Shown piece after piece: positions 11,701-44,600 of a DNA stretch of 64,000 nt. The first letter of the stretch is position 1. The number at the start of each line of letters is the position of its first letter. The notes below the pieces were generated by a model. It was not told the DNA's origin. It worked only from the letters and a program-made list of their open reading frames with translations, and ran no database searches. Both the position numbers and the translations under genes were made by a program. The stretch is taken from assembly GCA_000708835.1 (NCBI GenBank), contig DF236960.1, positions 276,982-340,981 on the forward strand, given 5' to 3'. Source of the DNA: Klebsormidium nitens. Lineage: Eukaryota > Plantae > Klebsormidiophyceae.

Positions 11701-14700
11701 AAGTTACTCGAGTCAGATCGGGTTTGGGTCCTCGGGTCAGTAACTATCGAAGCTGAGCAGAAACCATTTCGTCCTCGGGGGAAGGCCCCGAGTGCAGTTC
11801 GGAACCGGAGCCGTCATGACGCAGTTGTACGATGCATCCAGTTGCTGCAGTGGGAGCAGACGTGCTGGCCTCCTTGCTTCTGAAGAGTGTGCAGAAAAGA
11901 TACTTGAGTCAGAGCAGGTTTGGACATATGGCGGGCAGTATCGACCGTAAGGCGGAACCGGATCGTCCTCGGGGGAAAGTCCCAAATGGCTGTCGGGAAC
12001 TGGAGCTGTTATGACGCAATGGCACGAGCCGTCCGATTGCTGCGCGCTGTCGTACTGGCTTCCTTGCTTCTAAAGCGAGCGCAACACGGATGGTTTGTGA
12101 AGAATTATCGGGATACAGATCTCGTAAGTTCAGGGCGAAGAAGAGAGCGTTGTTCTCACCCCCGGAGAAAAGCGAAAACAGGAAAGAATGTTGAACTGAA
12201 GAAACTGCACCAGAACAAATTCGAGTAGTTCGTTCACTCATACACGTGCGTCCGAACACCAAAGGCTTGAAATGATTCGAAGACCAGTCGAAATCCTCTG
12301 AGGGAAAACAAAAGTATCTGAACAGATTTACCTGAGAAGAGCAACCTGTTTCAAAACAGAACGTTGCCGAAAAGGCTTTACGAAGTCGAAATATTACCTG
12401 GTCGTCCCACAGCTCCAGCCGCTCGGTGAGCGCCGTGTTAACTAGGATGGAGACGTCCATGAACGGAATCCCATTGGTGACAACGGCGCGGCGGCTGTCC
12501 CCGTGTTCAATGTGCTTGATGTACGCGAATTTGAGGTCGCGCCGTTCCGCCAACTGATGAACAGAGACACTGTCAATCTGCTAGCAGTTCTTGGACGACA
12601 AGTGTCAAGCTGCTAGCAGTTGATTCTTGGGCGTCCCTACGAAACTGGGGCGATGAATCATCCCAATCGCTCTTCCGAAGTGCAAGTCCTATAGCGCCTC
12701 ACCCGGCTCAGTCGCATGTGCAGGTTATCGTCGTCGTGCCCGTAACCCACGATCCTTTCGTCAAACCCGTTCGCGCGCGCCCAGATCGCGCGGTCGACGA
12801 AGTACACTCCGTTAAGGTGCCGCTCGTTTTCTGACCGCGCCGACTTCCAGTTCCCGGCGTAAAAGACGCCGTCAATGCGGGGATGGTTGGCAACGAAGTC
12901 GGGAAGAATGATGTTGTCCGAGTCTAGTTTCATAATCCTCGAGCCGCGGCTGTGGCGAACTGCGAGGTTGTACGCGCGCGTCAGGTCGAACTTGCCGGTG
13001 CCTGCCACCTGGACGGTAAAGGAAGCGCCACGTGTCTTTCATGATTGGATTTTGATGAAACTTTTGGAACTTGGTACGTGGGCGCCAGTGAACTTGGAGC
13101 ACACTCTGAATGCATTTTGGAAACTACGCACTCGACTATGGAAGAATAGGAGATAGACACAAAAAAAATACTGAGTTGTTTGGCAATGGTCATTGCCTTC
13201 CAAATCTATGGCTTATGAAGAGGTGACGTCTAAAGTCGGGTTTGAATCCCCGTAAAGACGAGGATTAAGGCTTCTCGTGAAACACATCTTGATTATCAGA
13301 GTTGCTCACCGGCTCCTTGCTCTAAGAATCATTGCAATTACGAAGCCGCCGACCCTTATGAATTCGATGAACCTTCACAGCTCGAAGAATACGCCACGAA
13401 AGCAAGTGAGAGACGCACTCTATCCTTCAACGCTGATATGCAGCTATTGGTAAGTCTGGGTCCGGTGCTCCACATGTGCTAGAAGCCGGTTGACGGATCG
13501 ATGCTCCTCATGTGACTGATCTGAAAGCAAATCGCACATACCTTGACATACTTGAGCCGTGGGTCCGTAAAGTTCGCCACCGCGTCAGTGATCTGAGTAT
13601 CGTTCCCGGGCATGTAGTCCACAACGATGACCTCGTCCACGCCCTTCGCAGCCAGCCACGTGGGCAGCGCTTGCATCAGCAGGTCAACCCGTGAAGGCGT
13701 CAGGGCCGTGCATACGGAGACGCCCTCAAACGGGGGGAGCGCGTATAAAGATGCCGGGTTGCACGTGAGTGGGGCGAGGCTCGGGTATTGAAAGTCGATG
13801 GACGCGCGCAGGATGCGTTTGTTGTGCGCGAGCGCTGCGACCTCGGTGAAGGAGCTCCAGTGGCTGCCCAGGATGTCGGGGTGGCTGGAAGGAGGAGCGG
13901 AAAGCGAAGTCAGGAGCGGAACGAGCGTAACAAGCAGGACAAGACGTGCTGAAAGTCGATGGAAGCGCGCAATGCGAGCGCCGCGACTTAAAAGAAGGGA
14001 CTCCAGTGGCTGCCCAGGATGTCGGGGGTGGCTGGAAGAAGGAGCGGAAAGCGAAATCAGGAGCGGAACGAGCGGAACGAGCTGATAAAACGATGAAAGG
14101 AAACGGACGAGATCTGGACGGAGTATAAGAAGACCTGAGGGGTATCTAGGATGACGGGGTAGCTGGAGGAAGGAGCGGAAAGGAGAGCGGGCGGCAGGGA
14201 AAGGAATGAGCGGAACGAACTTGAAGGGATAGAGAGAAAAAACCCTGACGGTTTTTGAAACGGGTGATGGGGATAATTTGGGATGTCGAGGTAGCTGGAG
14301 GAAGGAGCGGAAGGGTGAGGAGCGGATGAGCGGAATGAGCAGACCGGCACCGAGAAGGGATTGGAACACATCCTGAAGGTCGCCGGAAGGAGACGGAAGG
14401 AGTCTCACTCAACGGGCTCGATCGGAAAGAGTTCGAGAAGCAAACCAACCTGGAAGACTTTAGAATAATGCGTAAGCTGAGATTGTACTCTGGCCTTTCT
14501 GAGAAGACAAAGCGTGACAAAAGGAAAGAAGCAAGACCAGCGTCGCTGAAATGAAGCCACGCGGGAGTCGCGGCCGCGGCACGCGCACCTGCTGTGCGCG
14601 AGCATGAGGAGGTCCGCCAGCGCCTGGCGGAGGCAGTACGCCCCCCGCTCTAGATGGGTGCACCGGGGATCCCTTGGGATAGTGATGACGTGGCTCCCAA

Positions 14701-17700
14701 ACTCGCTCACCAAATCGTCTGTAACCTGCGCATGGGTTCGAAATTTGAAAGAATTGCCTATCGATAATAGCACTCGACGGCTTTTATGCATCAATTCTTG
14801 CTCACGACTCCTGTCGCGGGCCCTTCAGGTGATTGCATAGCCAGCTCCGGATGTGGGATTCATTGCTTGAGCCAAGCGCAAACTTTGAAGCTTCTCGAAT
14901 TTCCAAGCGGCCTCTTCTTGTCTTCCGCTTTTACATCACGCCTATAAAGGTCTGTCAGACCTTCAATGGGGATCCTTCTCTCAGTAAACCCACCAGAGCG
15001 CGGGTCGTGCCGTGAGTTCACTCGTAATCAGATTATGCAAAGGACCGTTACCAGACCCGTCAAGTCAGATACCCATTCCTTTCCGCGTCCGGGTTTTCGC
15101 CAATCTTACCTGCGCGGTGTCTGTTGCGACGAAGATTGATAGGCCCTCATTCTGCGCGAGCAGCGCGCGTAACGCGTGCACGAAGTGCGCGGTCGCGGCC
15201 ATGCGCGTGCGCGCGAGCTTCAGCTGCGCGCGGTCCCCGGCGGCATAGGTTGAGAGGTCTTCCGGCGTATCCGAGAATTCTGCATCATGACAAATGACTG
15301 TGATGAAGAGATTCCAAATCCTGCTTTGAAAGGAAAGGTCTCGCTGCTAACCGAAAGCTTAGTGCGCAGAGCAAGTTCTTTTCATATGCGCAGAGCAGGT
15401 TCTTTTCACATGCTTTTTCTCCATCCTCTGAGCTTCTGACGGACCAAAGACAATTTAGATTCTCCAAGGGCCTCCAGTGTAAAGTTCAAGTATTGCAATC
15501 CGAAGTCAGAAGCCCACCCGTTAGAATAGTTTCCCGAAAATATCAAAAGAGCAACTCAATTTGGAAACATCTCGTCTTTCAACTGCTAAGATTATGACCA
15601 CCGTTTCCTCCCCGCTACATTGGCTCTTGCTGAAGAAGGGATTGCACGCCAGAGAAATGCACACAAGAGCGATCAGAATAAACCAGAAGGCGAGAAGACT
15701 TACTCTTTTCAAAGCCGACGGACCCTTGCCTGATGTGAACGCCCACGTACGCAGTACACGGCCACCAGTCGCGTGACACGTGGCAGCCAGGGGCGTGAAA
15801 TTGACGAAGCGTGTGCTTGACGCTAGACACGGGCTCGAGTTCCTGGAAATGCTTCGCAAGCGCCGCTGGCTGCAGGAGACAAGCATAGCCGCTTCTTGTG
15901 CATGAGAAGATTATGTCGCGGGAAGTCTTCAAGTGCTTATTGAAGTTGTTCTAGCGGCCCTCTCTAGTCCGTTATTGACGATGTATTCTGATGGTTCCGA
16001 GATTCTTCGGTGAGGAATTCTGAGGCGTTTTGACAGCGCCACGGCTAGATGGCGTCGGAGCAGAACTCGTAACGTTTTTGTATGCACGGCAAGTGCCTGT
16101 CTCTACCAGATGTGAAGATCAGTGCGTCGCTAGACTGGACGCGATCATCGGGAAGCGTGCAACGGGGTTGTCGCGAAAGAATGACGTTTGCCTCTTACAA
16201 GCCTGGATCCCAACTAGCGCCCGCTTCCAAACTTTGAAAAAACCTCGACTCCCTTGGAAAGCTCAAGAGTTGAAATACAAAGTTCCGAGAGTCCGCCCAC
16301 TTTGAGAGTTCTAGGGGCGCTCTTCCAAATGATAACAGAGCACAGAGCATTTGAGATTAGAGTAAGTTTAATGGGCCCTTGACAAGAAAGCGCGGAATCA
16401 GATAAGTCTCGATTTAGGCTGACCTCGGTGTATGTTGAGTTAAACAAAGTCCCCGGGCTCAAACAAACTAAAAACCTAAACTCGAAATTACATGCTCGGC
16501 ACCGTACCCACCCTAAACCCCCAAACCAACCCCACACATCCCCTGGGCATGACCTAACTCAACATAGCCGTAACTCGACAAAAAACGAGACTGATTGTAA
16601 CACGTTCTCACGTCTTGGCCACTGGCCGACACGTTGAGCAGGTACGCCGAGCGGACGTATATGTTGCGCGGGCCGTCGTCGATGAACTGGTACTTTGCGG
16701 CGGGATCCATGTAGTCGTACGTCGCGAAATTTGAGCCCGCCACTTCAGCTTCTAGAAACTCATCCCACACGTCTTCCGCGTTTAGAAAGAGGTCCCCGAA
16801 GCGCGCGCGGCAGTGCACGTCGGGGGTCCAGATCACGCGCAGGTGACGGCCTGCGAAGGGCAAAAAGCGGGTATCCGCGTGTCAGAGAAACACAGTCTGC
16901 TCGAACCGAGCCCGTGAAGGACCAGGATGAATAAGTGCACGTTTTCTGGCCCCTTCTACCCTCTTGAGAAAAGGCTCTACTACGTTTTCTGCTCATTCAA
17001 ATGCCGTTCTGAACGAAAACATGTGCAGGGATGTGGATCCTTGAATTCCTTTCGCTTGGACAGAGCGGTTGACACTGCGAAACGCAACCACGACACGACT
17101 CACGCCGGACTCTTGTGCCCCGTTCAGGGGCTTTGATGAAATTTCTCTATATTATTTTGGAAGTATATGATCGAACTGCGGCAAAACCAGCACAAGAGCC
17201 CATCTAACCTGTCGCGTTGGCAAACGCTTTCGCGCTGAGGTAAGCCCTGATCCGGTTGCTGAGCCCGTGTTGCACGTGTATCAGCAAAACCTTGGAGCGT
17301 CCTTTTTCCCTCGCTTCCGCGTACGACCGCTGCAAGGACGAAAGAGGATCTAGACCTTACACTTTGCACCTTTTACATTGACAACGGACGTTCATTACGG
17401 GAATAGCCTCCTGCCGTTTTAAAAGGCTCGAAATCAAGATATAATCGAACGTTTGCTTTGCAGGAAGGAGTGCGAATTGACGGAGCTTAAAGCACGATCA
17501 AAGTCGGATTCTGTGCTCATTATTAGAGAGGTCGAAGGCGATGGCAGGACATGGCAGAACTAGACATGGGCAAAGATCAGTCGCGCTCTGAACCCACCAG
17601 CATTTTCTGCACATAAGGCGGGGGAAAGGCGGCTACCGCCGACTCTGTAAACCCATACTCCGCAAGAACCGTGCTTCCGGCCGTCCGGAGGTCGAGCGGA

Positions 17701-27463: not shown

Positions 27464-30400
27464 TTAACAACAAGACGAAAACAATTGGCTGAAAAAGCGC
27501 CCCAAATATCTCGACACCCTATACTTATCTCGTGATAGGTCGACAAGCGTGAAACCAGCAAGGAGATCCCAGGGCTGCAAGAAGTGCGAGAAGGCGAGGA
27601 AGAAAATCAATGCGTCATCGTCATAATAGACGAGCACGCGGTGCTCAACAGCCAATTAGCATGTGATCTTGAACAAGACGGTGCGCTGCCAGTCAAAGCA
27701 GAAGAGACCATACGATGGACTCGGAGGAATAGCGTACCGTGAAGCCGTGCATTCCCAGGTGGTCGAGGTGGCCCTTGTAGAAGCGCTTCCGCACGAACGG
27801 AATGCGGACGGAAAACAACACCGGAGTGCCGATCGCCTCCACTTTGGCGAGAATCGGGTACGAGTGTTTCGCGTCTTCCTCGTTGGGCCGGGCCACCGGG
27901 ACCTGCACGGGGCAGATTCGCAAGCAAATCAGAACTATACAAAACCTCCGGTACAGGAATAATTGAGCCATTCTTTTAACGTTGTTACATTTCCGGACAT
28001 GGATCCGCTGTGCTTGTTTTCAACACAGCGTCTGCCATTGGCAGAGAGTCAAGGAAAGCACCCTCAGTTGTTGGTCTACCGAAATTGACAAGACGCGATG
28101 ATCTATCCTGGCGGCTAAACGGCTAAGGCGTGGCGCAAATCGGCATCCGAATTTCAGTGGGCGTCGATCTGTGCTTGCGGGGCTCTATTGAAGAGCCAGA
28201 AAATACGGTCTCGGAAGTCACAGTCTAGCGAATGGCCAGCTGATGTTTCGCACTCTCGCTTTGCTACAGCGACACACTCTCTGTTTGTATTCGAATGATG
28301 TATGAAAGAGATCAAACCACCTGATTGCGGATCTTACCTGCGTCAAAGTCCCTTCGAGACGCAAGCTCGGCACGAGCCATCTGGGCACCCTCTTGATAGC
28401 CTTCCAGGTCTGACCCTTGACAAGGTACTTGGCGTGGCCGACCGACCCCCCGACCAAGTCGCACGCCGTTACTTTAGACCACACCGGGGGTGGAAGCACC
28501 TGCCCCGAGCGCCCTGTTTTACGCCCCCCCTTGGTGAAGTCGTGCGAGATCTCCTGCTTTGTCTGCCGGCTGGCGCGCGTGTGGGACTCAAGCGCGGCCA
28601 CTGGGGAGTTGCCCGGGAGAAAGTCTTCCACCACGTAGCCCTGCCACGTGTACCAATTACAGCAGTAAAGGAAAAGCGCAGTGGATCACCAGAGAACGGT
28701 TCAAGATCTCCTTAACGTTCAACTGGGGGTAGTTCAGGGCTCGTTATGGGCCGGTTAGAAAATCGTTATATGTCGGAAAACCGACTCGGGCGATGAGCAC
28801 GCTTCAAGAAACAAGGTAATAGCCCGGTGTTTTGCTCATTAGCCTCAGACTCAAGGTTCAGACTCATCCTGTTTAGCAGCCAATAGACGTTTTGAATGCT
28901 GGGACGGGTGGGGGTTGCTAGGGGGTCAGTAAGGCTGCGGGTGTGAGTGCACGAGGAGAGCGCGTCAACAACTGGTCTAGAGTCTTAGTCAGTTCAACGC
29001 TTATTTTCCCAAATCCTCGTACCTGCCACATGCCCATGAAGCGGTCGATGCTCAGGGGGCGATCCGAGGGGAGCCCATCGGAGGACACGTGTGCGTCCGG
29101 GGGCAGAATCCAACGGCGGCGGGGCTCGCTGATTGCCGCTTCCTGCTCGACGAAGTTCCACGGGTCTTGAGGGGGGCGCAGGAAATCCCTGTCTCCCCCT
29201 GGAATTGCAGAATTTGTTTTTGGTTGAGAAGTGGGACATATCGCAACATCACGCGCGTCGCTCGAAGCGCGTACGTTGGTCGCTCATTGGATCTTCCGGA
29301 GTTTACCATTCAACGTCCGAGGTGCCACATTTGGCTGGGCTGAACACCTTGGAGCAGCGGATTCCATCACGCTTGGCGGTTCAGTCACGAGAATTTTTGC
29401 AGGTGCTGATCCGTCAAAATCCGAATCTTGGGCAATGCAGTGGCGGCTTCAATCGCAGGAAACAATGGTAGAAATGTCTGGAGTATCCGCGAAGCCTCGT
29501 AACTGTTTGGAAAACACGAACGAAGCGGACCGTGATTGCCTACCTGCGTCCTCAGGAACGAACACGTAGTTTTCGCCTCTCTCCAGAAAGGTTTTGGGGT
29601 TCAGAACGGTACCGCTCTTCGTCTTTAAAACCCCTTTGCCAAACCCAGAAAGCTTCTGCAGGGCATCGAGCGCAGCTTTTGCGGACCGCGGCTGCACCAG
29701 CTGCGAGGTCACTCCGTCTTTGATGATCCGAGCGGGCTGATCAAGAGCGCCGTTCAACGCAAGCGGCGCATCTGGAGAGAGTACAAAAGTGTGTGTTGCA
29801 ACTCTTCTGTCTGGCGAATCCCCTTTGGGACAGCGAATTCACCGGCTACCTTTAACGATCGCCCATTCCAAAGGACCTCAAGCCGTTTGACGTCACCCGA
29901 ACGACCCAAAAACTGGCCGGTACGCTACCGCCTCTGGCCCCGCATTTTGAGTCCCCTTCGTCGTCTGGCCGCAGCAGGATACCGCTGCATTTCCCGTTTG
30001 CTCACGCCATGATTAGTTGAGTTTGGAAGCCTCGGTTGATATGCTGAACCCTGACGAATCCCTAATCTGAAGACACGCCTTTGCTTCCGCGCGTTTCTGT
30101 CAGCAGCAGAGACGTCTCAAGGCCTCCCCTCCGGATTTACCACTAGGTCGCCGTTTGAAGAACCAAGACGTGGATGCTAAATGCAAACAGAAATCCTCCT
30201 ATCCGGCCTTTCAATCTGTCGACATCAACGTGCGCGTGCAGTTTTTCCAGCAGCTTACTATCCAACACGTGCCTGATCCTGCCACTTACCTTCCGGGTCT
30301 TTTGTCGTTAGCGTCAGGTGCGCACACGAGTATTCCAGCTTTTCTTCGTGCAGGACTTCCTTGAGCATCTTGTTGTTGGGGAGAGGCAGCTTCGACCCGT

Positions 30401-33400
30401 GCCCCCTCTGTGCCATCACGAAAAGGCCGTCGCTGGGATCCAATTTCAGCATCTCTTTGATTTCTCCCCCCAGGTCCGTCAGGCGAACAGAGATTTTGGA
30501 TATTTCAGAGGCTTTCGGATCCCCGGCGATCGGTATCGGCGGGTCGACTGGGATGACGTGCAGATCGTCTGCGACGACGAGAAGGTGACGTTAGGAGTTG
30601 ATTCATTCCGGAGTCAGGACCTTTACTGCGTCCTTGGTTTTCAGTTATTCATTTACTTTGAGCAGCAGTGGACAGAACAAGAAGTGTGCTGACAGCAAGC
30701 CAAAGAAAATGGCTGTCCAAATTCGCAGGAGCTAGGAGGTAGGAAAAGTGGTTCATGTCTTCAAAGGGAAAGACTCTAGTTGGCATGCTCGTGTGCATGT
30801 CCCGTGGGACCAAACGCCCCAGATATCACTCTAGAACTAGAAGCAAGGAAGTTTGAGCGCTCAACAGGCATCATGTACTCTACTTTATTCTGGGTTCACA
30901 CAGAAAAAACCAGCATCAAAGCCTGGAGCTTCACTGTGATTGGCAGAGCGCCTGAGAGACATGATCAAGCATGCAAGACCAAAGCATGTTTGAAGTAACT
31001 CATGCCGAATGTCAAGGTCGAGATAACCTGCCAGATAACTAAGGCCGTTCAACATACCAAATCTGGGGAGTTCGTCAACCGGAGCCATGGTCCAGGTTCC
31101 CCCCTCCTGCGCAAACTCCAGCTCGTGCTGATTGGCATTTGGCAGGGCTGCCGCCACGGTCGGGCCCTTGTACATCCAGTAACCGTGCATCCCCAAGCGG
31201 TCCAAATGCCCCCGGTACAGCCACTCGTCATTCCCGGTGCTCGCCTGACTTTCCTGAACACGTACAACCAGTGCCAGATTTGTTCTCAAATCCTGATGGA
31301 CTTTGATTGCCTACAGAATTGGCGGATCAACGTTCAGTTTCGTGATTCACTCTTCAAACGGAATTCTGATGCGAAGGTCATCTCTTGAATCGACGAAAGT
31401 TTCTTATGTCGCGGAAATGTGGCAGTACGGGAGCTGAACGAACCCATCCACCTTGGCTCGGCCGATGATGGACTTACAAGCGTCACCCTCAGTTGCAAAC
31501 TGCGCTACTTTTCGCTCGAATGGACTGCCACACGACGGCACTCCGAGTTACAAGCTGGAGAAGATCAGCAATGGTGCGTTCATTAAGCAGGAAGCCGCCG
31601 GTTTTCACATCCTATCTGGCGTGTTAGTTTTCAGAAGCTATCATCAATTTTAAATATCCCGATTCGCCGATCAAATTTCTCAGGTCCCCATATCACCTTT
31701 TTCCCCTTGTCGTCCGGGCCAGCCTTGCTCCGGTCGGTCATCTGCAACGCATGCGTGTGATCGTTCCGACAGCTTGGCTTGCAAAAGCGGGTGAAACACC
31801 CGCCCGCGATTGGCGGCGGGTCATCCGCGTCGAGCCGTGTCGCGGCGTATTTGAGCGTGCTGGCGCCGTGCCAGTTGGCGCCGCGCGCGCTCTTGAGGTA
31901 GTGTTTCCGCATCTCCACGACGCCCAGGATCTCGTACGGGGTGTTCTTGCAGCGCCGGATCTTGTTTTCAAGCTGTGCGGAAAAAGAAAGACTTCAGAAG
32001 TACTTTGTATCTTGATTTGATGGGTTTTGGCATGCGATTTGTTGTCCTCAAAACGCATGCAACTCTTAGGGCAGGGTCGCAGAGCGCTTGTGGGGCACCT
32101 TTTAGCTAAGCTCGTTGAGAAAGGGATTAATCGAACTTGAACCACAATCGAAAACTGCTTTCAGAGTCCGCAATTGCCTTTGGAGAGGATTACCAGCGGC
32201 TGTCTGCTCCTGAGATCAGTTTCGTTACTTACTTCCTGAGGTTCAAGCACGGAAAATAGCGCTGCAGCTGTGGGACAAACGGACGCTCCCTGCCACAAAG
32301 CTCTTTACCCATGTCAAAATCGTAAAAAAGCAAGAGCAATCACGGTCTTTGATCGTTCTCCGGAGTGAAACCCTCTGAACAAGCTTGCCAACCTCAGGAC
32401 TGGTCCTATCAAATTGTCGCGCTACATTTCAGCCAGGCCGATGTCCCGCTCCATCACACAGATATAAGCACACCCATGATTGTCAATTCCCCGCCTTTAC
32501 TCACCTCAACGATGTCGCCCTCTATCATGAACTTTCCCTTATCGTCGTGACCGGTACCACTGATCTTCAGCTGGTGTAAATAGGCCGACTCGACGCCTGA
32601 CGTGGCTGCCGTGAAGCGCTCGACTTCTGGCCGGTGGATTTCCATTGTCAAAACGACTGCTCCGGGTATCTGTGTCAGGGATTTGTGCCACGTGTAACAG
32701 CCGTACCAGAACCCTTCAAGATCGTTGACCCAAGCCTCGCCGAGGCTCCGTCGGGGGCCTCTCTGCAACAAATAGAAACGAACCTGGAATCAGGAAACAC
32801 TTACAACAGGGCTTTTCAGTGCAGTGTAGCAGAAGTCCCACCAGAAATGTCTTACAGGAAAGCTTTCCAGCCCCGAAAGGTTCCCGTTCGATAATTATTC
32901 ATAAAAGCTCTCTCTACAGCATTCTTATGTCTTGCTAGGCTGGTTCTTTTTTAAGATCGATCATGAAAGAGTAATCGCTCGTGACTGCGACTTCCAGGGA
33001 TGGACACACCACCGCCTATTACGCGCGCACGGAGTTCAGTGATGCTTCGAGATCCATCACTGCTTGGATAGTTCCCGTACGCTGCACGGAAGCTGCCAAA
33101 CAGACACCTTCAATCCGACTTCTGAAAGCGTGAATAGACTTCTGAAAGCGTGAATAGAGACACGCTGTGATTGCAAAATTCGATTTTTATTGGACCCACA
33201 GCGACTAGCTTGAACCCTTTCAGCGTTAAAAGAGGAGGTTTTGATAAAGCTATGCACCAGAACTCGCACGCGAGCGTTGCACACACTAGGTGCTAATTAA
33301 AGAAAAAGGAGGGGAAAAAAAGGTGGGAGTCTCCAGCGGGTCATGTCTACAGGTAGTTCGGTTAATTCAGTTTGGCCTGGTTTAGAACGGTGTCAAAAAA

Positions 33401-36400
33401 GCGGAGTGAAAGTGCCTCTGAGTTCCATCTATCCTTTAATGTAGGCGATATCGGCCCAAGTCTTACCGCTCGCTTCACGGCGTACTCCGTCGCGCCCTCC
33501 GCTCTCTGCAGACGGTCAATGCAAACGATAAGCAATTAAGCTACTGAAATCTGGGAGGTAAAATGCCATCTATAAGGTTGAAAGATCAGTTGCCTTCCAA
33601 ATTAGACACAGATTCTTCTGGCAGCAATTTGATACCAGCATCGATGCCAAACTCCAACTTCATCCCAAATCGCAAGGGCTTTGAAAGGTGAAATGTTCTG
33701 GATCTTGTGAATTCTGACTCACGATACCCTTGGTTGTTCTGTTGTTGAGGATTATAAGATAGCTAGGCCGAAGAGGTTGGTGGTGACTAGCTGGTTTGGG
33801 AGCTGGTTGGTCAAGCTTTGCAGGTAAAAATGAACGGCAAACAAACAAAAGCAGATATTCGATTGCGTATCTTTCACCTTCAGCAAGCCAGACAGCATCT
33901 CGTGGAGGCTGAATTTCTCGGAGCTACCTCCAGCACCCGGCACCTTGCATTCAATAGCTTGGATACCCGGCAGTTCGTCCAGCTTCTTGATCCCCTTGTA
34001 ACGGATTGCCCGCCAGTGGTGTGGGCTCTTGACCGAGTCGAGCCACTCGTTGGGGTCATTGGCGTTGTAGAGCAGCGTGTCGCCGCCGATTGCTTGATGG
34101 CTGACTTGGTTGCCGGCCTCAGTGTCGCTTTGCCCGGTCTGCAATGCGAAACCTTCCCTTGAAACATCCGTCGGTGGTTGCACGAACTGATGGTTGTCCT
34201 TGAGAACTTTGCAGAGTTTGAGAAGCGTTCCAAATGTAGGAGGAGGACTTGATCGACCTCTCGTGCAGGAATTCTCAAGATCTGAAGGCGCAGGCATATT
34301 AAGCTCGCGCACGTGGTCCGCTTTGAGCTGCGTGTTAGGGAGCCCAACAGATTTGCGGGATTGTTCCAAGGCCTCTCTCGGCTGCATCATGGACCTTGAA
34401 AGTGACTGTGAAGCCTTGGTAAACGAGAAGAAGGAACCTGTAACTCCGCTTAGAGAGCGTACGGTAAACCAACTTCATGACTTTGCGCAAGGGTCGTTGC
34501 TTCCAGCCTTTAAAGTTTCTAAGCAGTTTTGAACTGTTTCCTGTTCAACCTGGTCCAGAGTCATCAAAGTCAAGGAAGCAAGCTAACATTATAATAAGCA
34601 ACCGGCCGCACCAAGACGGGTGAGGTTAGTAATATCTTGGTTCATCATATTTTCCATGAAACTTATCATGTATCCTCCCACCTTCTGCGTGGTGCCAAAC
34701 ATCGCGCCCACGCCCGCGCCGCCCCCCGCCGCGGCCGCCTTGACGTCAGACTTGATCGACTCGGACTTCTCGTGGGTGCTCTCTTCCCAAGTCAGGTCCT
34801 CCTTCGACGTGCGGTAGATCTGACCGCCCAGGGTGATCTGTACGGCAGCACACTCTGACGTGGTCATATCAGATAAATTCACGCATCCTCAAAAGCTCCA
34901 TAAAGCATCCGACGGTGGCAAGCTGGCACCGGAACCGTGCGCCCACGAATGCTCACCCATTGTGATCTGCTCGGCGGAACCGCGTGCATGACAAAATCCA
35001 GGATCGGTAGTGTTGGATGCAGCGACAGTAAAACAGAGTTTCTAGAAGCCCAATCCGGAGTGACACTGCATATTCTTCCAAGAAAAGGAACAGATCAGCA
35101 AAGGATTAAACAAGATCAGCTTGCGCTGCAGAAAATTCCCGCAGAACAAGCCTTTTTTCAAAGTGAAAATCAGGTTGTAAGATCAGCGCGACTACTAGTA
35201 CGACGTCACGGCACCTGCTGTCACTCTACGAGGAGCGACTCAGTCAGTGATTTCAAAAAGGCCTCTTTCCGTGTCAGAACGGAATGCCATTCGGTCACGT
35301 CCACATTCGAGGACAGCTATCGCAACGACACGAATGAACCGCACAAGCGCACCTCCTCAACCCACACCGCTCCAAACCGTTGAACCAGGTCTTTCACGTC
35401 CTCGAGAATGTCTTTGAGCTTCGCGATCTCCACCGCTGCCTTCTCCCAATTCTCGACCTGCTTGTTCCGCATCTCCTTCGACATCTGAAGCGCTTTTCCC
35501 ACGGCTTCGGCACTGTTACCTTCAATGGCGTTTACGATGTTCCACCGCCTGTTGAGAGGAACACACCTTCCGTTAAATTGCATGAATTCTGTTCAAGGGC
35601 CAATATTTCAAAGCAAGAAATCATTAGAAAGTAATGCATTCAAACCAGAGCGGTCTCGTAAAAGTCTAAATGAGGACGCTTGAAACTCGAAAGCTGACGC
35701 TGGACGAGTTATTTTTGTTTCATACATACATTCATCGAGTGGGGACACAGGTTTTGTGCAGGCAGGCAATAGCCTGTCACATGAGCAGAACAAATGGCGA
35801 GAATCTGACGAGAAAGTTCAATGGAGACGAGTCGATGGTTAAGTACAGATTTGACGCATGAAAGGCTGGAAAAGACGCAGGTCCAGCTGCCCGGCTTTCA
35901 GTTGATAGTCCAGACGACTCTTCTTTTCCGGAATAACTTGTGGGACAACAGTTTCACCGCCCTACTCCACGCTCAGCCGTTGAACCTTTTGAAAGTTGCA
36001 CGTCAAAAGAAAGTTCCCATTGTTGACAGCTTGCGAGATGCTGGGGCGGTAAAGCGAACGAAACATAGCCCTCGCTGAAGGGGCACCGAGTCGGTTTCGG
36101 AGAGAAAGCAATTCTGAATGAACACTGCCCACGTCTCTTGCATTTGCAGGTCTGCTTCCTTTGCTATTCAGTGAGCTGCCACTAAGTCATTTCGTATTCC
36201 TTCTTACTCTGTAAGTGCCCCGTGTAAACTGCACAAGAGTCGCAACAGCGTGATCAGGGACCAGAACAACATCCGAAGGCATCACGTTTGACGCTCGTGA
36301 ATAAGAAGTATACCTCTTCACAAGGTCGTCCGGTGTTTTGTCGGCTTCTCCGTCCAACGTGCAGATGCCGGACCCCATGTTACAAAGGTCCCTTTCTCTC

Positions 36401-39252
36401 GCTTTCAGGTTCCCCCAGATCTTAGCCACGCGCTCCGTGAAGTCGGGGTTGATCTCGAGGTAGCCTTTTTCGACGGAGGAGCGGATGTCAATGCGACAGC
36501 GCGGAAACTCGGCCTTGGCGGTGAAGTAGACCGTTCGCGTAGCCTGCAAGAATAAGGGCCACTCTAATCAGTTGCGCGCAAGTTCAGGAGGTTTGGGATC
36601 TTGAGGACCCTAGTTACCGCATATCATATGCGGCCTCGGCGAAGAAGTGGACGGCTCTGGTAGCCTGTTCAGTCGTTAGGTTGCGAACGTAAGGAGCGGA
36701 GAACCAACCTGAAGAGGACAGGGGTAAGATGCACTTTTGACTTTCTGGGTGCAAGGAGATGTAGGCGCATTTCACGGTCCTGTGCAGCTTCCTGGTGCTC
36801 CAAATGAGACCCTTTTTTCCGAAGAGTTTAACGGGATGCACTTTCGAAACGGCAGGTGGACTGAAGTCGTCAAAGAGTTGAGATCGACACTGAGTTCTTC
36901 GAAGCCGACTCGACAACCTTCCGTTCCTACCTTTGCACTCAGTCTTGCTTTTGATTGTAAGGTCCAGAGACAGGCTGCTTTGAGTAGCTGAGACCATTCT
37001 AACGAATGACAAAGAAGCCAACACGGCCAAAACGTTGCACAATGATCATGCCCAGCCTCTCTATCAATTTTGAAACAAGCAACTTTAGCTGAACGATGGA
37101 GGCGAATGAACAGCAGCCGCAACATTTGACACGTCCAAAGTCCTCGTCCTAAGCCGAACGTCATTAGGGAACATGCAAGTTAGTCAAACTGCTACCCATA
37201 AGCGGACGACCTCAGACTGAGAGACACAAAGCAAACTGCGAGAATGTTTCCTCACCTGCTTTTTCGCCCACGTCTCCGTCTGCTTCGCTTCGACCGAGGC
37301 GGCGATGTACGGCACAGTGATCTTCAGATCTTCGCTCGTGAAGCCGTTCTCCAGGAAGAACCGGCTGCGCTCCGTCTGGGTTGTCTCCACCGACACAGAC
37401 ATCTTATCGTGGGGCTGTAAATAACTGACAGTGTGTTATTATGAGTCGGTTACGTTTTGTCAGGACAGTGAGAAGGTCAGATATTGATGGCCCAGTTGGC
37501 TCACGCCTTGTCCCTTAGCAGCTATTTATCAAGAAGATGCAAAGGCTGTACTGGTCAGGGAGAGGGGCACAACTTTCTACTTCTTCGAGACTGTACACTT
37601 ATTGGCGTCGCCTTCTGAGAACTCCAACCAGACTCTATTGCAACCACTGCCAGCACCCCAAGAAAGATTGACCGTCTTTCTGAACTTCCAAGCTTCATCC
37701 TTAAAGACATTGGCCACCTTTTTTCACCTGCCTTATCCCGTAAGGGGAGGGAGGCTTGCAGAGCAGGTCAAATGCGCAATATGCTTTTGATTCATTTGGG
37801 CTTAGCGGAAGTCTGCTGCGTTAGACGTACTCACCAAGAACGTTGGTATGTTCTTGACTTTTCTCGCCATTTCCTGCGCTTCTTTCTTGGCAACACCCTT
37901 GGACTCCTCAGTTCCGCCTCCCGCTGTTCCTGCTCCAGTTTGAGGGGGCACTGTCTTGTTGGCTGCATCTATTGCAGCCCCTTCTTTGCCTCGTCCTGTG
38001 GGGCCCCCTTTCTTTGTCAGGCCCTTGGCCAGAACAAACAGAGGCTCCATGCTCCTCCTGGGGTACTTTTCGTCGATGTCATAACCCTGAGCAAGGAAAA
38101 GTATAGGATTCTTAGACGAATTGCAGGCAACTGTTGGAAAGTTGGAGGATTTGGCAAAATTTGAAGGTTACGGCTGGGGTCTTGTAGAACAGAGTGTGCA
38201 CATCTGAAGCTCATCAGCAATGAAGTTGTAGAGCAGATAGTCAAACCTAATGTGGGGACCTTCTGGAAAATGTCACCTTTGTCAGACCCTACTTGGTGAA
38301 CCCAAGAAGAAACGATGTCTGTCGCCTCAGGACACAAGTCTCAGCTCCAGATATAAGTGGTCTGTGGCAAAGCACTGGCTTAGCGAACAAGAGAATTTGC
38401 AATCAGCGTTCTTTGCAATCAAGCTTTCTCTGAGTTTGGGCTGGACAAAATCATGGTATCCTCTCAGACGAGAAGTTTCCTTTTGCAAACTCTATCCTGA
38501 AAATAGACCTTTCTACTGAAACAGACCGAGTCCTTCTCAAAGGGTTGTCTCCTGACACAGCCTGTTAGCCTGAATAGCATAATCTGCCCTGTCCATCCAC
38601 GGACAATTTGGAGAGCCTAACCTTTTCCTGTTCAGAGCTAGACGTTCAACAATCAATCCAGAAGTTAGCCTCTGTTTCCGATTTCTATATCACGAATACG
38701 AATTGCAAAAGAGAAAAAACTTCACCTCTCGGTGGCTTTACCATCTCAGATTCGTAGCTCAACTTATGAGCGACTTACCTGATACAGCCCTGTCATTGTG
38801 AACAGCTTGTCCCAATCCTGTGGCGCCAAGTCCGCTGCATTCACGTTTGGGCTCCCCCCTCGGCCCTTGCCCCCAATCAGGGTTGAAACCGCGGAGTTCA
38901 CCGCTTGGTTGAGGTTCTTGACCAGCTCAGCGTTCTTTGGATCGCCCACAAAGAGTGTGGTGTCGGGGGACTTCAGAGGGGAGAGTTGATCCAAGACTGA
39001 TTTGGGTTCTTCTGGCTTTGACCCTGAGTCCTTTGCTTCCTCTGACTTCGACTCACTGTCCTTCTCTGTAGCCTTTTTGCCTTCAGGCTCCCCCTTGTTT
39101 TCATCTCCTGCAGTTTCCCCCCCTCCTTCGTTAGTCCCATCGACTGTGCTCTTCTTCTCTTCTGGCTTGTTTACAGTTGGTGCATCAGAGTCTGCGTCTT
39201 CAATTACCAATTTGTTTGGTTCTCCGGGTTCACCAGTTTGCTGTCCCTCCAT
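27464..39252 (-). CDS. MACPF (membrane-attack-complex/perforin) domain protein, ~1250 aa, no signal peptide. C-terminal region has a duplicated beta-rich domain flanking two putative ubiquitin-like domains
   Basis: 17 phase-consistent exons: 39252-38779, 38086-37835, 37414-37256, 36543-36314, 35548-35353, 34837-34682, 34138-33878, 33505-33467, 32762-32505, 31972-31697, 31253-31058, 30568-30290, 29771-29544, 29198-29023, 28640-28338, 27902-27738, 27574-27464 (3759 nt). MACPF-like motifs: LVQRFGAVWVEE-ITLGGQIY (the F/YG-x-H/V..V-x-LGG signature) and AIGGD..DPNEWLDSVKSPHHWRAIRYKGIKKL. The upstream block WDKLFTMTGLYQGYDID..PRRS.EPLF..IPTFLPHD resembles fungal-type MACPF proteins as I recall them. 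The start codon is uncertain; an extra 5' exon near 39440-39630 is possible. Confidence 0.75.
28899..28960 (+). repeat. Dispersed G-rich repeat family, copy 3 (truncated, in MACPF gene intron)
   Basis: CTGGGACGGGTGGGGGTTGCTAGGGGGGTCAGTAAGGCTGCGGGTGTGAG shares its start with the 8551 and 40071 copies. Confidence 0.55.
33118..33157. repeat. Perfect 20-bp tandem duplication in an intron
   Basis: ACTTCTGAAAGCGTGAATAG occurs twice head-to-tail. Confidence 0.9.
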
Positions 39253-40033
39253 CTTTCCTGCCTTAAAACCAATGCTCAAATTGTCCAACACCTCTAATGT
39301 GACAAGATGTGATTTTGGCGAAGGCTATGCAGATATAGAAGAGAGGGGAAGGAAAGAGGCAGACACTTGCTCCCTAAGACATGATCAGCTCAGGAGAGAG
39401 ATTGATTGAGGGCGGGTGAAGCTATATATTGAGAGGGGGATCAAGAGCTCCGGGAGAAATTGAAAAGTGGATCAATCAGCGCAGGTCGAAACCAAGACAG
39501 GCTGTAGCCGAATGAAGGCTCGCTTGCGCACGCCGCGGCGCACACTTTGTTGATCGCCACCGTTTGGTGCAGCTCAGCTGCGCATTCTTTCCTGCAGCGG
39601 GCCAGTTGGGGGGCATCCGGGCGCATCCAAAGATGTTGAAAGCGTGCAAACTGGAGGTATGAGGTGAGCTAAGAACTGGGTCAAGAGGTCTGGCAAGAAG
39701 GATGAGCAGCTGATCGACATGGAAATGGAATGTGGCATGAACTGGGAGGGAACTGGGCGCTTTATATGAGGAATGGATTGGTCAGCTCTTGACAGGAAGA
39801 CGAGCGAAGTTGGCAAGGATTCTGCGGACTCAGCCATCCGGCCGATCCAATTGAAATCAAGTCCGCTTCTTTGGTTCGTGCGGGACCATTCCCCTCGACA
39901 ATATTCATGCATTATGATGGCACGGATCAAGCTACCACGCGCATACTTCTCATGTCCCGTTGAAAGCGCGCCACAATGCAGGGATTCACAATATCGAAGC
40001 CAAGGAGCCTGCCAAGGAGGTCTATTTCTATCG

Positions 40034-41609: not shown

Positions 41610-44600
41610 ATGGCAGCTGCAAGGGGCTCCCTTTTAATGCCAGCTGGCGGGCTGCTGGTGGTTCTCTGTGTCGTTGTCTTCTTTGTCCAATCTGTGCAAG
41701 CGGTAAACGCCACGGCGCCGGCGAACTCCACCTCGCTGCTGTCGGTGATTGACTACAGTAAGTGGAAAGTCCAAGCTGATTTCTTGACATTTTAAACTGG
41801 ATCAATCTAGGGATTGGTCGTCATTGCAATAAAGGGAAAGTGAACCGGAGACTCTTACTCGTTTGCATGTGAAGAAGACCAAACTGACTGTTTGAGTGCT
41901 TGCGGACGCTTGCGCGAATCCTGACAAGGAGGATAGAGCACTTCTAGGTTGGCACTGAACACATTATTTTGTTTTCTGGCCAAAGCTTTTGCACTGCAAC
42001 CAGTGTGAGCAACTTTTGGAATGTCAGTCACGTTCAGATTTCAAAGGGTATCCACAAGTTCGAAGACTCACACGGTTTGCTAAGCTCCAAATTCTGCTTT
42101 CAACTGCCACGTTTGCTCAGGGATCCCCTTCTGACCATTCCCAATTTCGGGTGTGCTTACAGGCCCAGATCACGTCAGCTACTCTGGGAACATCGTCACC
42201 CTCAAAATGGACTCACAGTCTGGGTCGAGAGTGCACTCTGTTGGCCGGTACGCCTACGGAGTTTTCTCAGCAGATATCAAGTGCCCCGCCGGAGATACAG
42301 TGGGTTTGATTCCCACTTTCTACACGTCCAGCTTGGAAGGAAGCGAATACAAGGATGAGGTCAGTCTGACGTCGCTGAATAGAGTTGCTTGTGAATTCTG
42401 GTCAAGTGCTTTGCTTCAGAATAATCTGGTTTGTGTTGACTATATGGCAGTACAGTCGGTCTTGTTGCAGTGCTGTATGTAAAGCAGAAACCTTTGGTCT
42501 GTGGTTCTCCTCGTGGGCTGCCTCAAATGGGTCTTTTCAAGACATACCCTATTTTTAGGGCTGACTGATTAGGTTTTTCCTGTCAAGTTCATTCCAAATA
42601 TATCCGCTCCTAGGGGAGCCAAACTTTTGCAAATCAAGTCCAAGAACATGCCCATTCAAGCTTTCCTCCTCCTTTGCAACAAGTCCCCATCACTTCACTA
42701 ATCAACACAACGGGCCCTGACCTTCTGCTTCTTGGGGCTAACAGCTCGACTTCGGGTAATTCAGGCTACAAAGATCGATCGTGCAAGCCGAAGACTGGAT
42801 TCGAAATTGCTTTTCGTTGACGGCACCAACCCAGCTCTACTCAGATAGAACCGATTCTGGATTCTTCCAGTTTGTCTTGAATTGTAACAGCTCGCCTTTG
42901 AGCTGTTGGGCAAAAGCAGCTCGATTGTCCAAACCAACTACAGGCTCAATGTTCATATTCTGCAAAGGACCTAGCCAGCAAAACTCCACTCAAAAGCCGA
43001 GCCCTGATCACCTTTTCCCTTCTCTTCTGCAACAGCTCGACTGGGAGTTCCTTGGCAAGAACAGTTCGATTATCCAGACGAACGTCTGGGTCGACGGAGT
43101 CGGCAAGCGGGAGGCAGTGCACGACCTGGGCTTTGACTGCTCCCAAGCATTCCACAAATACACAATTGACTGGAACCCCTTGCGCGCAAAGTGAGCTTTT
43201 GGCAGCTTCGTGGAAGCATGAGCTGGATGCGGATGTCATTCGTGTGAGCCGGTATCAATAGGATTTGGGGCTCGCCGAATTATCATCTGAAATTTGAAAT
43301 TCCGAGGTGACTGCAGGTCCTGAGGATCGAAATTTCGAAGTCATTGACTATGAATTCTGAGATGCTTTGCGAAAGAAAAGACTTTTGAAAGCCGACTCGG
43401 GTCCTCAGGGCCCGACTCGTTCTCCGATTTCACTGTAGCCGATTCGTGCACCCCTTTCTTCAGTGCTTGACATCACGCACTTACCTGCTTCATCGCGTCA
43501 GCCCAATATAGTGCCCCAAATTATTCGTCCATCGCTCCACTATCGCACTCGGCTCAGAGTCGTCAACTCAGCAGAACGAACTTCCCACCTGTATGTTTGT
43601 GACTTTCCTGACTCCTTGCACTTTATGGTCCAACTTTGCAGGTGGTTTATCGACGGGCAACTTGTGCGGACGTACGTAAACACGGGCAACGCCTCCGAGT
43701 ATCCCACCAAGCCCGCGTACGCTTATGCCTCGATTTGGGACAGCGGGTATCCCGGAGAGGGATGGAACGGTGAGCGGAGACTTTGTCATTCCGCTCCTTC
43801 AGATGCTAGGATACCTGTTTGAGAAACATGGTTTTGGGTTAGGATACATCATTTACTTCTCGTTTGACGCTGCTCGGACGACGAGGAAGGAAACGAAGCT
43901 TCTCAAGCAGATTCCGAGGTCAGATTAGCAAATCAGTGAAAGTATCGGTTGCTTCCGGTTATTTTAGAAAATATCGCAAGCAACATATGGGCTCCAGTCC
44001 GAGCAGGCGGTGAATGAACAGACACAAACCAGCCTCGTACCTCTTTCGACGTCGAGTGGGTTCGCATGACATCCGCACCGGTTTTCCGCGGCTGAAGGAA
44101 GTCACAGAAAAGAAAAGATCACGGAAGCAGGATTCTAGTGCTTTAACGTATGGAGTCCCCCTTTTCTGTTTCTTCATCTGCTTCCAGGTGGTCTGAAGGT
44201 GGACTATACAGTTCCGCCGTTCTCGTTGCAGATTGCTCTGCCCACTATGAATCACTGAGAAGCTGCATCCGCCAAACAGTAAAAGCATTCTTCAAGACCC
44301 TACAAAACCGCATTTGCTGTCTAGGATTTGCTGAACTGGGAAATTCTCCCACGCTCTCTTCCTCTGACCAGCTTGATCTCGAGCGTCTCATATATTCACG
44401 GATCATATTTTCAACGTTGTGCCAACCTACCTTCCGCAGGACGTGCCACATATGCAAACGCCCCGTACTTCTACCAACTGGCCAACGTCACGGTCAGCAG
44501 CCCGGGGAGTTCTACCGGGCCGTCCTCCGCCCCCAGGCCCGCCCCAGCACGGAGCCCGGTTGGGAGCCCCGTGAGGAGCCCGGTCAAAATTACCCTTCCC

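Follow-up and report, generated by a model that had tools for sequence, protein, structure and literature searches.

What does the long, intron-rich gene on the minus strand between positions 39252 and 27464 of a 64,000-nucleotide stretch of the Klebsormidium nitens genome encode (GenBank assembly GCA_000708835.1, contig DF236960.1, positions 276,982 to 340,981 of the forward strand; this whole stretch is called the window below), and could its product be a membrane pore-former? A first-pass annotation, made from the sequence alone, had proposed that the gene joins a MACPF-like core to a C-terminal region of no recognized kind. In the green lineage, knowledge of MACPF proteins comes mainly from the land-plant cell-death regulators CAD1 and NSL1, whose mechanism is still unclear, and the literature we searched contained no description of a MACPF protein from a green alga. 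We conclude that the gene probably, though by no means certainly, encodes a soluble MACPF-family protein of 1,252 amino acids (aa) that is of the fungal, pleurotolysin-like type and carries a lineage-specific tail. The protein would consist of three parts: an acidic, disordered head (~aa 1-140), a MACPF-like core (~aa 140-576), and a tail joined to the core through a micro-exon of 13 aa.

This reading depends on whether head, core, and tail belong to one gene. The minus-strand open reading frames (ORFs) between 39.3 and 27.4 kb contain every string that the first-pass annotation quoted, and an independent count of the exons also gave 17, the number it had claimed. In the resulting model, the minus-strand gene begins with an ATG at 39252 and ends with a TAA at 27466-27464, and its open frame of 3,759 nucleotides (nt) yields the 1,252-aa protein. 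Spliced contigs from four public runs were placed on 30700-36650, and they confirmed eight introns across exons 4-11 in four runs, all of them CT..AC on the plus strand and hence GT..AG on the minus strand. Joints were seen at 31252/31696, 31972/32505, 32762/33467, 33505/33878, 34138/34682, 34837/35353, and 35547/36313, and the loose ends of the RNA contigs were located at 37260 and 30568. One contig of run X1, 4,404 nt long, carries all of the joints of exons 4-11 and continues for ~1,600 nt on the 5' side and for 1,180 nt on the 3' side. Given that this contig spans exons 4-11, the MACPF half and the C-terminal half are parts of one transcript. The idea that 39252-33878 and 32762-27464 might be separate genes is thereby set aside, as the X1 contig bridges both, and the predicted junction 33878/33505/32762 was borne out by micro-exon joints in four of four runs, exactly at the positions claimed.

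A search of public runs found 17, from six studies, that contain sequence of the gene. Twelve runs from three studies contained 0.26-0.31 of the words sampled from a 9.9-kb part of the window (29400-39300), a fraction that fits spliced RNA, since the exons and the included 5' untranslated region (UTR) make up ~0.31 of that part in our exon model. Reads cover exons 4-11, and exons 1-3 and 12-17 rest on other support: their borders were placed by canonical splice sites, reading phase, and homology; the lengths of the contigs beyond the placed stretch are compatible with them; and exons 1-3 and 14-16 are also backed by collinear counterparts in one related locus, L002. The locus is thus an expressed single nuclear gene of a green alga.

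Several signals within the gene lie outside this model. A joint at 32686>33908 (GC..AG, depth 2), seen in run X5 only, was taken as an assembly artefact, and an ORF at ~29900-29850 (G-D-V-K-R-L-E-V-L-W-N-G-R-S-L-K) was rejected as an exon, as no acceptor preserves the frame after exon 12. Short contigs of low depth from runs X1, X5, and X6 fall within introns 10, 9, and 7 (31404-31702, 31988-32172, and 33704-33877), and they are unspliced RNA or DNA traces.

The gene is not confined to this one genome. A search with exon 9 of 1.84 billion representative proteins returned only three related exon fragments, from relatives, and no full-length protein, and no relatives came from two profile scans (exon 7 and exon 9) of JGI metagenome contigs. 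The contigs of the exon-9 fragments, plus those found from exons 7 and 11, make up loci L001-L006. L002, a 44-kb JGI metagenome contig, matches exons 1-7, 9-11, and 14-16 in collinear order (30-60% identity); L004 has exons 6, 7, 9, 10, and 11 at 55-75% identity; and collinear homologues also occur in L001, L003, and L005/L006, the overall identity being ~45-75%. Four to five related loci retain the architecture of core plus tail, which is thus common to several related organisms. In contigs of a sister organism, B, ~2% of the exon positions differ from the window, and 14 of the 21 listed differences are synonymous. The mostly synonymous differences, together with the collinear homologues, show conservation under constraint. 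Introns have been gained or lost among the relatives: exons 4 and 5 are fused in L002 (5534-5947), exons 10 and 11 are fused in L004 (3602-4312) and in P0008, and in L002 and L003 (1057-1131) an extra intron sets off the first ~14 aa of exon 9 as an exon of their own.

The head and the core are encoded by the first seven exons:

38779..39252, minus strand: exon 1 (aa 1-158), with donor CAG/GTAAGT.
37835..38086, minus strand: exon 2 (aa 159-242), with acceptor CTCAG/GG, donor TTG/GTGAGT, and phase 0/0.
37256..37414, minus strand: exon 3 (aa 243-295), its 3' end fixed by an RNA contig loose end.
36314..36543, minus strand: exon 4 (~aa 296-372), which supplies strands of the core and opens the first helical cluster.
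35353..35548, minus strand: exon 5 (~aa 372-437), a charged helical stretch, both joints RNA-confirmed.
34682..34837, minus strand: exon 6 (aa 438-489), joints RNA-confirmed.
33878..34138, minus strand: exon 7 (aa 490-576), the end of the core, with G-G-D ... W-L-D-S-V-K ... H-W-R-A-I.

The conserved core is opened by the last ~20 aa of exon 1 (W-D-K-L-F-T-M-T-G-L-Y), and the C-terminal third of this exon shares 34% identity with L002 over 83 aa. Exon 2 begins with G-Y-D-I-D-E, typical of the N-terminal strand of MACPF domains, and continues into a Gly/Ala/Lys-rich insert; its start has a collinear counterpart in L002 (E 0.001). Family searches of the core were run exon by exon, and the strongest single family signal came from exon 3, which matches Pfam PF22693 (MACPF_1, "Fungal MACPF-like domain") at profile positions 33-85 of 265 with an E value of 1.5e-4 to 1.8e-4. 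Exon 4, with its joint at 35547/36313 RNA-confirmed in four runs, shares 53% identity with L002 over 68 aa.

The published MACPF signature reads Y/F-G-x2-F/Y-x6-G-G (PMC9505663). In our gene, exon 5 ends in F-G-A-V-W-V-E-E, the first half of a MACPF-type signature, and exon 6 opens with the second half, I-T-L-G-G. The joined string, F-G-A-V-W-V-E-E-I-T-L-G-G, spans the RNA-confirmed exon 5/6 joint and follows the pattern F-G-x2-W-x6-G-G, a relaxed signature with W for which the chance expectation in this protein is 0.0036; its spacing and glycines agree with the published form, and its F-G-A-V-W-V-E portion is invariant in L002. Both of the MACPF-like strings quoted in the first-pass annotation are present, the first of them across this joint. 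Beyond the signature, exon 6 (68% identity to L004) is Ser/Lys-rich and then Gly/Ala-rich, and the Gly/Ala-rich stretch is a candidate for the second membrane-inserting region.

Exon 7 gave further MACPF signals. The exon itself matches PF01823 weakly at positions 144-181 (E 0.23, 12 bits), and its orthologue in L001 matches at positions 142-189 (E 0.049, 14.2 bits), both below the cut-off of 21.5 bits. When four exon-7 orthologues were combined into a profile, the best natural PDB matches were eight pleurotolysin B sequences (E 0.22-0.48), with alignments that fall near the C-terminal end of the MACPF domain. A feature search of the atlas with exon 7 placed MACPF as the top named cluster (score 0.76), which we treat as a lead only; matches of this exon to de novo TIM barrels were discarded as repeat artefacts. 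Exon 3, the signature across exons 5 and 6, and exon 7 all give signals of one superfamily, and their order agrees with that of the models. On this sequence evidence, a core of MACPF type is very probable, and the core (~aa 140-576, exons 1-7) is probably of the fungal MACPF-like or pleurotolysin B kind. The original view that the core scores better against fungal-type models holds at the level of single exons, in the match of exon 3 to PF22693 and that of the exon-7 profile to pleurotolysin B.

If the core belongs to a family of membrane-active proteins, where in the cell might it act? The start ATG at 39252 has favorable flanking bases (A at -3, G at +4), and 72 nt before it the frame is closed by a stop codon. 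Exon 1 agrees with the description of an acidic N-terminus, being of low complexity at its start and carrying 31 D+E residues versus 18 K+R. The first 30 aa are hydrophilic (mean hydropathy -1.13), and neither a signal peptide nor a transmembrane helix was seen by hydropathy, no 19-aa window anywhere in the protein exceeding 1.22; in our gene model, the protein thus lacks a signal peptide, as had been claimed. Fungal MACPF-like proteins usually lack a signal peptide, and some of them still reach the secretome (PMC9505663). Because this lack is so common in fungal MACPF-like proteins (PMC9505663), a missing signal peptide alone is not a pointer to a cytosolic role. The cytosolic immune or cell-death effector suggested in the first-pass annotation would be a reading from architecture only.

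The remainder of the gene encodes the tail, which begins beyond the micro-exon:

33467..33505, minus strand: exon 8 (aa 577-589), a 39-nt micro-exon linking core to tail, both joints seen in four of four runs.
32505..32762, minus strand: exon 9 (aa 590-675), the first block of the tail, with W-Y-G-C-Y-T-W-H-K ... G-x-G-x-D-D-K-G-x-F, joints RNA-confirmed.
31697..31972, minus strand: exon 10 (aa 676-767), ending in a variable linker, joints RNA-confirmed.
31058..31253, minus strand: exon 11 (aa 768-833), with W-L-Y-R-G-H-L-D-R-L-G-M-H-G-Y-W and then G-G-T-W-T-M-A-P-V, joint RNA-confirmed.
30290..30568, minus strand: exon 12 (~aa 833-926), the first middle segment, its 5' end taken from an RNA contig loose end, donor AAG/GTAAGT.
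29544..29771, minus strand: exon 13 (~aa 926-1002), the second middle segment, splice-site based.
29023..29198, minus strand: exon 14 (~aa 1002-1060), a linker ending in D-R-F-M-G-M-W-Q, acceptor TTCCAG/GG, donor CAG/GTACGA.
28338..28640, minus strand: exon 15 (aa 1061-1161), with G-Y-V-V-E-D ... R-L-E-G-T-L-T-Q and a basic low-complexity insert.
27738..27902, minus strand: exon 16 (aa 1162-1216), the second repeat copy, F-Y-K-G-H-L-D-H-L-G-M-H-G-F, plus Y-P-I-L-A-K-V-E.
27464..27574, minus strand: exon 17 (aa 1217-1252 plus TAA), with an acceptor after a long pyrimidine tract, phase 0.

The micro-exon has a counterpart of 39 nt with AG/GT borders in L001 (714-752), and exons 9, 10, and 11 are conserved in the relatives. 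Exon 10, with the motifs Y-E-I-L-G-V-V-E-M-R-K ... W-H-G-A ... G-C-F-x-R-F-C, shares 56% identity with L004 and 34% with L002, and exon 11 shares 75% with L004. Toward the C terminus, exons 14, 15, and 16 share 51% (over 47 aa), 36%, and 57% identity with L002. We found no Pfam, PDB-sequence, or atlas relative for exons 9, 10, and 11, no Pfam or PDB match for the natural fusions of exons 10 and 11 in L004 and P0008, and none for exon 10 or exon 12 on its own. Structures were modeled with AlphaFold for two single tail exons, 9 and 13. The exon 9 model, built from a five-sequence alignment (predicted local distance difference test [pLDDT] 67), predicts a short helix and a five-strand antiparallel sheet; it has no significant structural neighbor and covers too little of a larger unit to define a fold. 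The C-terminal region was described from the outset as unrecognized, and that description stands, with no match to any known family by Pfam, PDB, or fold comparison. The tail (aa 590-1252) appears to be lineage-restricted, with relatives found only in a few close species.

A possible identity for part of the tail was also considered and rejected. The string Y-E-I-L-G-V...M-R-K-H-Y-L-K in exon 10 recalls a DnaJ J-domain; the exon has no PF00226 match up to an E value of 10, no PDB match, and no H-P-D, and its motif recurs in the tail repeat of exon 16. At the other end of the tail, the protein finishes in -S-S-C-C (27467-27478, minus strand), a terminal double cysteine that may take a lipid anchor.

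The tail had further been thought to contain two related blocks separated by two segments with a beta-grasp-like, putatively ubiquitin-like pattern. The first of these claims stands in part. Exons 11 and 16 match at 10 of 16 residues (E 2e-7) and share Y-x-G-H-L-D-x-L-G-M-H-G, and a collinear match of 12 aa between Y-E-I-L-G-V-V-E of exon 10 and Y-P-I-L-A-K-V-E of exon 16 is weak (hhalign P 0.012). Exons 9 and 15, by contrast, show no BLASTP similarity and align by hhalign only over four columns (E 0.38), and no other repeats emerged from an all-against-all comparison of the exons. A full tandem duplication of a tail domain was therefore not found; as far as sequence can tell, the short block alone is demonstrably repeated.

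The middle segments (exons 12 and 13) lie between the two motif-sharing blocks and are small and fast-evolving. The model of exon 13 (pLDDT 66) predicts the order strand-strand-helix-strand-helix-strand, which is beta-grasp-like, and it returned no significant structural match, with weak Ufm1 and PB1 rows among many unrelated ones. A search of 5.8 billion clusters under a length filter gave no homologue of exon 13; longer proteins fall outside that filter. Exons 12, 13, and 17 have no counterpart in L002, and no relative covers exon 17. In place of exons 12 and 13, L002 carries two mutually similar ORFs (13230-13571 and 14619-15164; W-K-P-L-x-V-x-P-F-D-x-x-A-D-L ...) of another unrecognized kind, so that the middle of the tail is swapped between relatives.

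How closely does this protein resemble known MACPF systems? The nearest appears to be pleurotolysin B (PlyB; PDB 4OEJ and 4V2T; PF01823), which the exon-7 profile matches best among natural PDB entries, although weakly (E 0.2-0.5). Like PlyB and the fungal MACPF-like proteins, which carry a signature of the Y/F-G-x2-F/Y-x6-G-G type, our gene has a motif resembling that signature (here with W), lacks a classical signal peptide, is intron-rich, and encodes a beta-rich accessory region after the core (PMC9505663). The differences are also clear. PlyB has ~480-520 aa, a small C-terminal trefoil, and an aegerolysin partner, whereas the K. nitens protein has 1,252 aa, an acidic head, and a tail of 660 aa with no detectable relation to the accessory region of PlyB. 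No aegerolysin-like ORF was evident by eye in the ORF lists for 17.9-27.4 and 39.4-48.3 kb, which did not include a profile scan of spliced neighbors. The PF22693 family is matched by one exon, below the gathering score, and the host here is an alga and not a fungus.

Other comparisons rest on layout or description. GNIP1Aa (MACPF plus beta-tripod) and perforin (MACPF plus EGF and C2) share the arrangement of a core followed by beta-rich modules that choose the target membrane; the tail described here matches none of their accessory domains by sequence, and the exon 9 model has no significant structural neighbor. The plant cell-death regulators CAD1 and NSL1 are likened to our protein by description, as intracellular MACPF proteins from the green lineage for which no pore has been described. 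From this likeness, a part in cell death or defense would be a natural guess. Neither CAD1 nor NSL1 is known to have a counterpart of this tail, and the exons of our gene score against the fungal-type model and PlyB.

In the MACPF fold, a bent four-strand beta-sheet is flanked by two helical clusters that become transmembrane hairpins. Most likely, the protein would work like other MACPF proteins, binding a membrane and then oligomerizing. The helical clusters that flank the signature (exons 4-5 and 6-7) would refold into inserting beta-hairpins, and the beta-rich tail may have a targeting or regulating role, as do the accessory domains of perforin (C2), pleurotolysin B (beta-trefoil), and GNIP1Aa (beta-tripod). 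Lacking a signal peptide, the protein would either stay and act within the cell or be exported by an unconventional route, one reported for fungal relatives. We infer how the core folds as a whole, that it makes pores, where the protein acts, and what the tail does.

Several observations weigh against reading the gene as a fungal-type pore-former. Many proteins with the MACPF fold do not form pores. No single exon reaches its Pfam gathering score (22.1 bits versus 27.5, and 12-14 versus 21.5); neither Pfam nor PDB gave a MACPF match for exons 4, 5, and 6, whether singly or as profiles, or for the exon of L002 in which 4 and 5 are naturally fused; and the signature has W for the published F/Y, with G-D in place of G-G in L002. 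In addition, the X1 contig extends ~1,604 nt on the 5' side of exon 4, and exons 1-3 account for only 885 nt. The surplus of ~719 nt would imply either a long 5' UTR or unseen upstream exons (39253 to ~39970, minus strand), and it leaves some room for an upstream coding exon.

A serious rival, to which we give a clearly lesser chance, is that the protein has the MACPF fold but makes no pore, acting as a membrane-associated regulator or scaffold with a tail for protein or ligand contacts. Such a role has been proposed for plant CAD1 and NSL1 and for the animal astrotactins and BRINPs. The missing signal peptide would suit it, as would the 55-aa Gly/Ala/Lys-rich insert of exon 2 in the first part of the core, the strong charge of the first helical cluster (exon 5), and the relaxed signature, with its W here and its G-D in L002. 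Reviews report MACPF proteins repurposed away from pores (PMC5483515). However, L004 preserves the Gly/Ala-rich stretch of exon 6 well, as expected of a functional hairpin region, and the closest signals are to true pore-formers, the pleurotolysin B proteins.

Another alternative, compatible with the pleurotolysin-like reading, concerns where the core came from. It may have been acquired from a fungus by ancient horizontal transfer and later fused to alga-specific tail modules, a scenario that we consider possible but doubtful. The best Pfam match is the "fungal MACPF-like" PF22693, the best natural PDB match is fungal pleurotolysin B, and a review suggests horizontal transfer among fungal MACPF genes (PMC9505663). 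Yet we saw no close fungal homologue, exon 7 matches the general PF01823 and not the fungal model, and the gene has 16 introns and a G+C content of 0.51 against 0.49-0.55 in the window. Its spread among relatives, at 45-75% identity, also shows that it is old in the lineage. Given the introns, the host-like base composition, and the conservation in relatives, any transfer would be ancient.

A bolder and rather improbable reading is that of an alga-specific intracellular MACPF "executioner," in which the tail would sense a lipid, a metabolite, or a pathogen cue and release the pore-forming core. The sensing parts would then be the block of helix and curved beta-sheet, the conserved Cys-containing insert, and the H-L-D-x-L-G-M-H-G blocks. 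If true, this would be a self-contained sensor-plus-pore device for cell death that evolved separately from gasdermins, MLKL, and plant resistosomes, on the branch toward land plants. That the MACPF likeness arose by chance in a lineage-specific protein of another fold throughout is unlikely: all family matches lie below the curated thresholds, exons 4-6 lack any family match, and the scanning of ~40 exon-sized queries weakens the E value of 1.5e-4 to ~0.006, but three separate parts of the gene give signals (exon 3, the signature across exons 5 and 6, and exon 7, the last in two species and as a profile), they converge on one superfamily in the order of the models, and the motif alone was expected only 0.0036 times.

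In the neighborhood of the gene, ORF pieces resembling a GH16 xyloglucan endotransglucosylase/hydrolase (XTH), with the motifs D-W-E-F-L-G and W-F-I-D-G, lie on the plus strand at 42150-43820. This GH16/XTH-like gene sits between the MACPF-like gene and a PLD gene, the start of which appears in the ORF lists.

On present evidence, the K. nitens locus is a well-supported gene of a probable family with an unexplained tail, and not a new kind of system. It would place an expressed and conserved MACPF-like protein of the fungal type in an alga, and, if its origin is fungal, it would also add to the record of transfers from fungi to the green lineage. If the core forms pores, the tail would be a novel module that targets or controls an ancient killing machine, and the gene would offer a tractable case for learning how such machines stay safe inside the cell.

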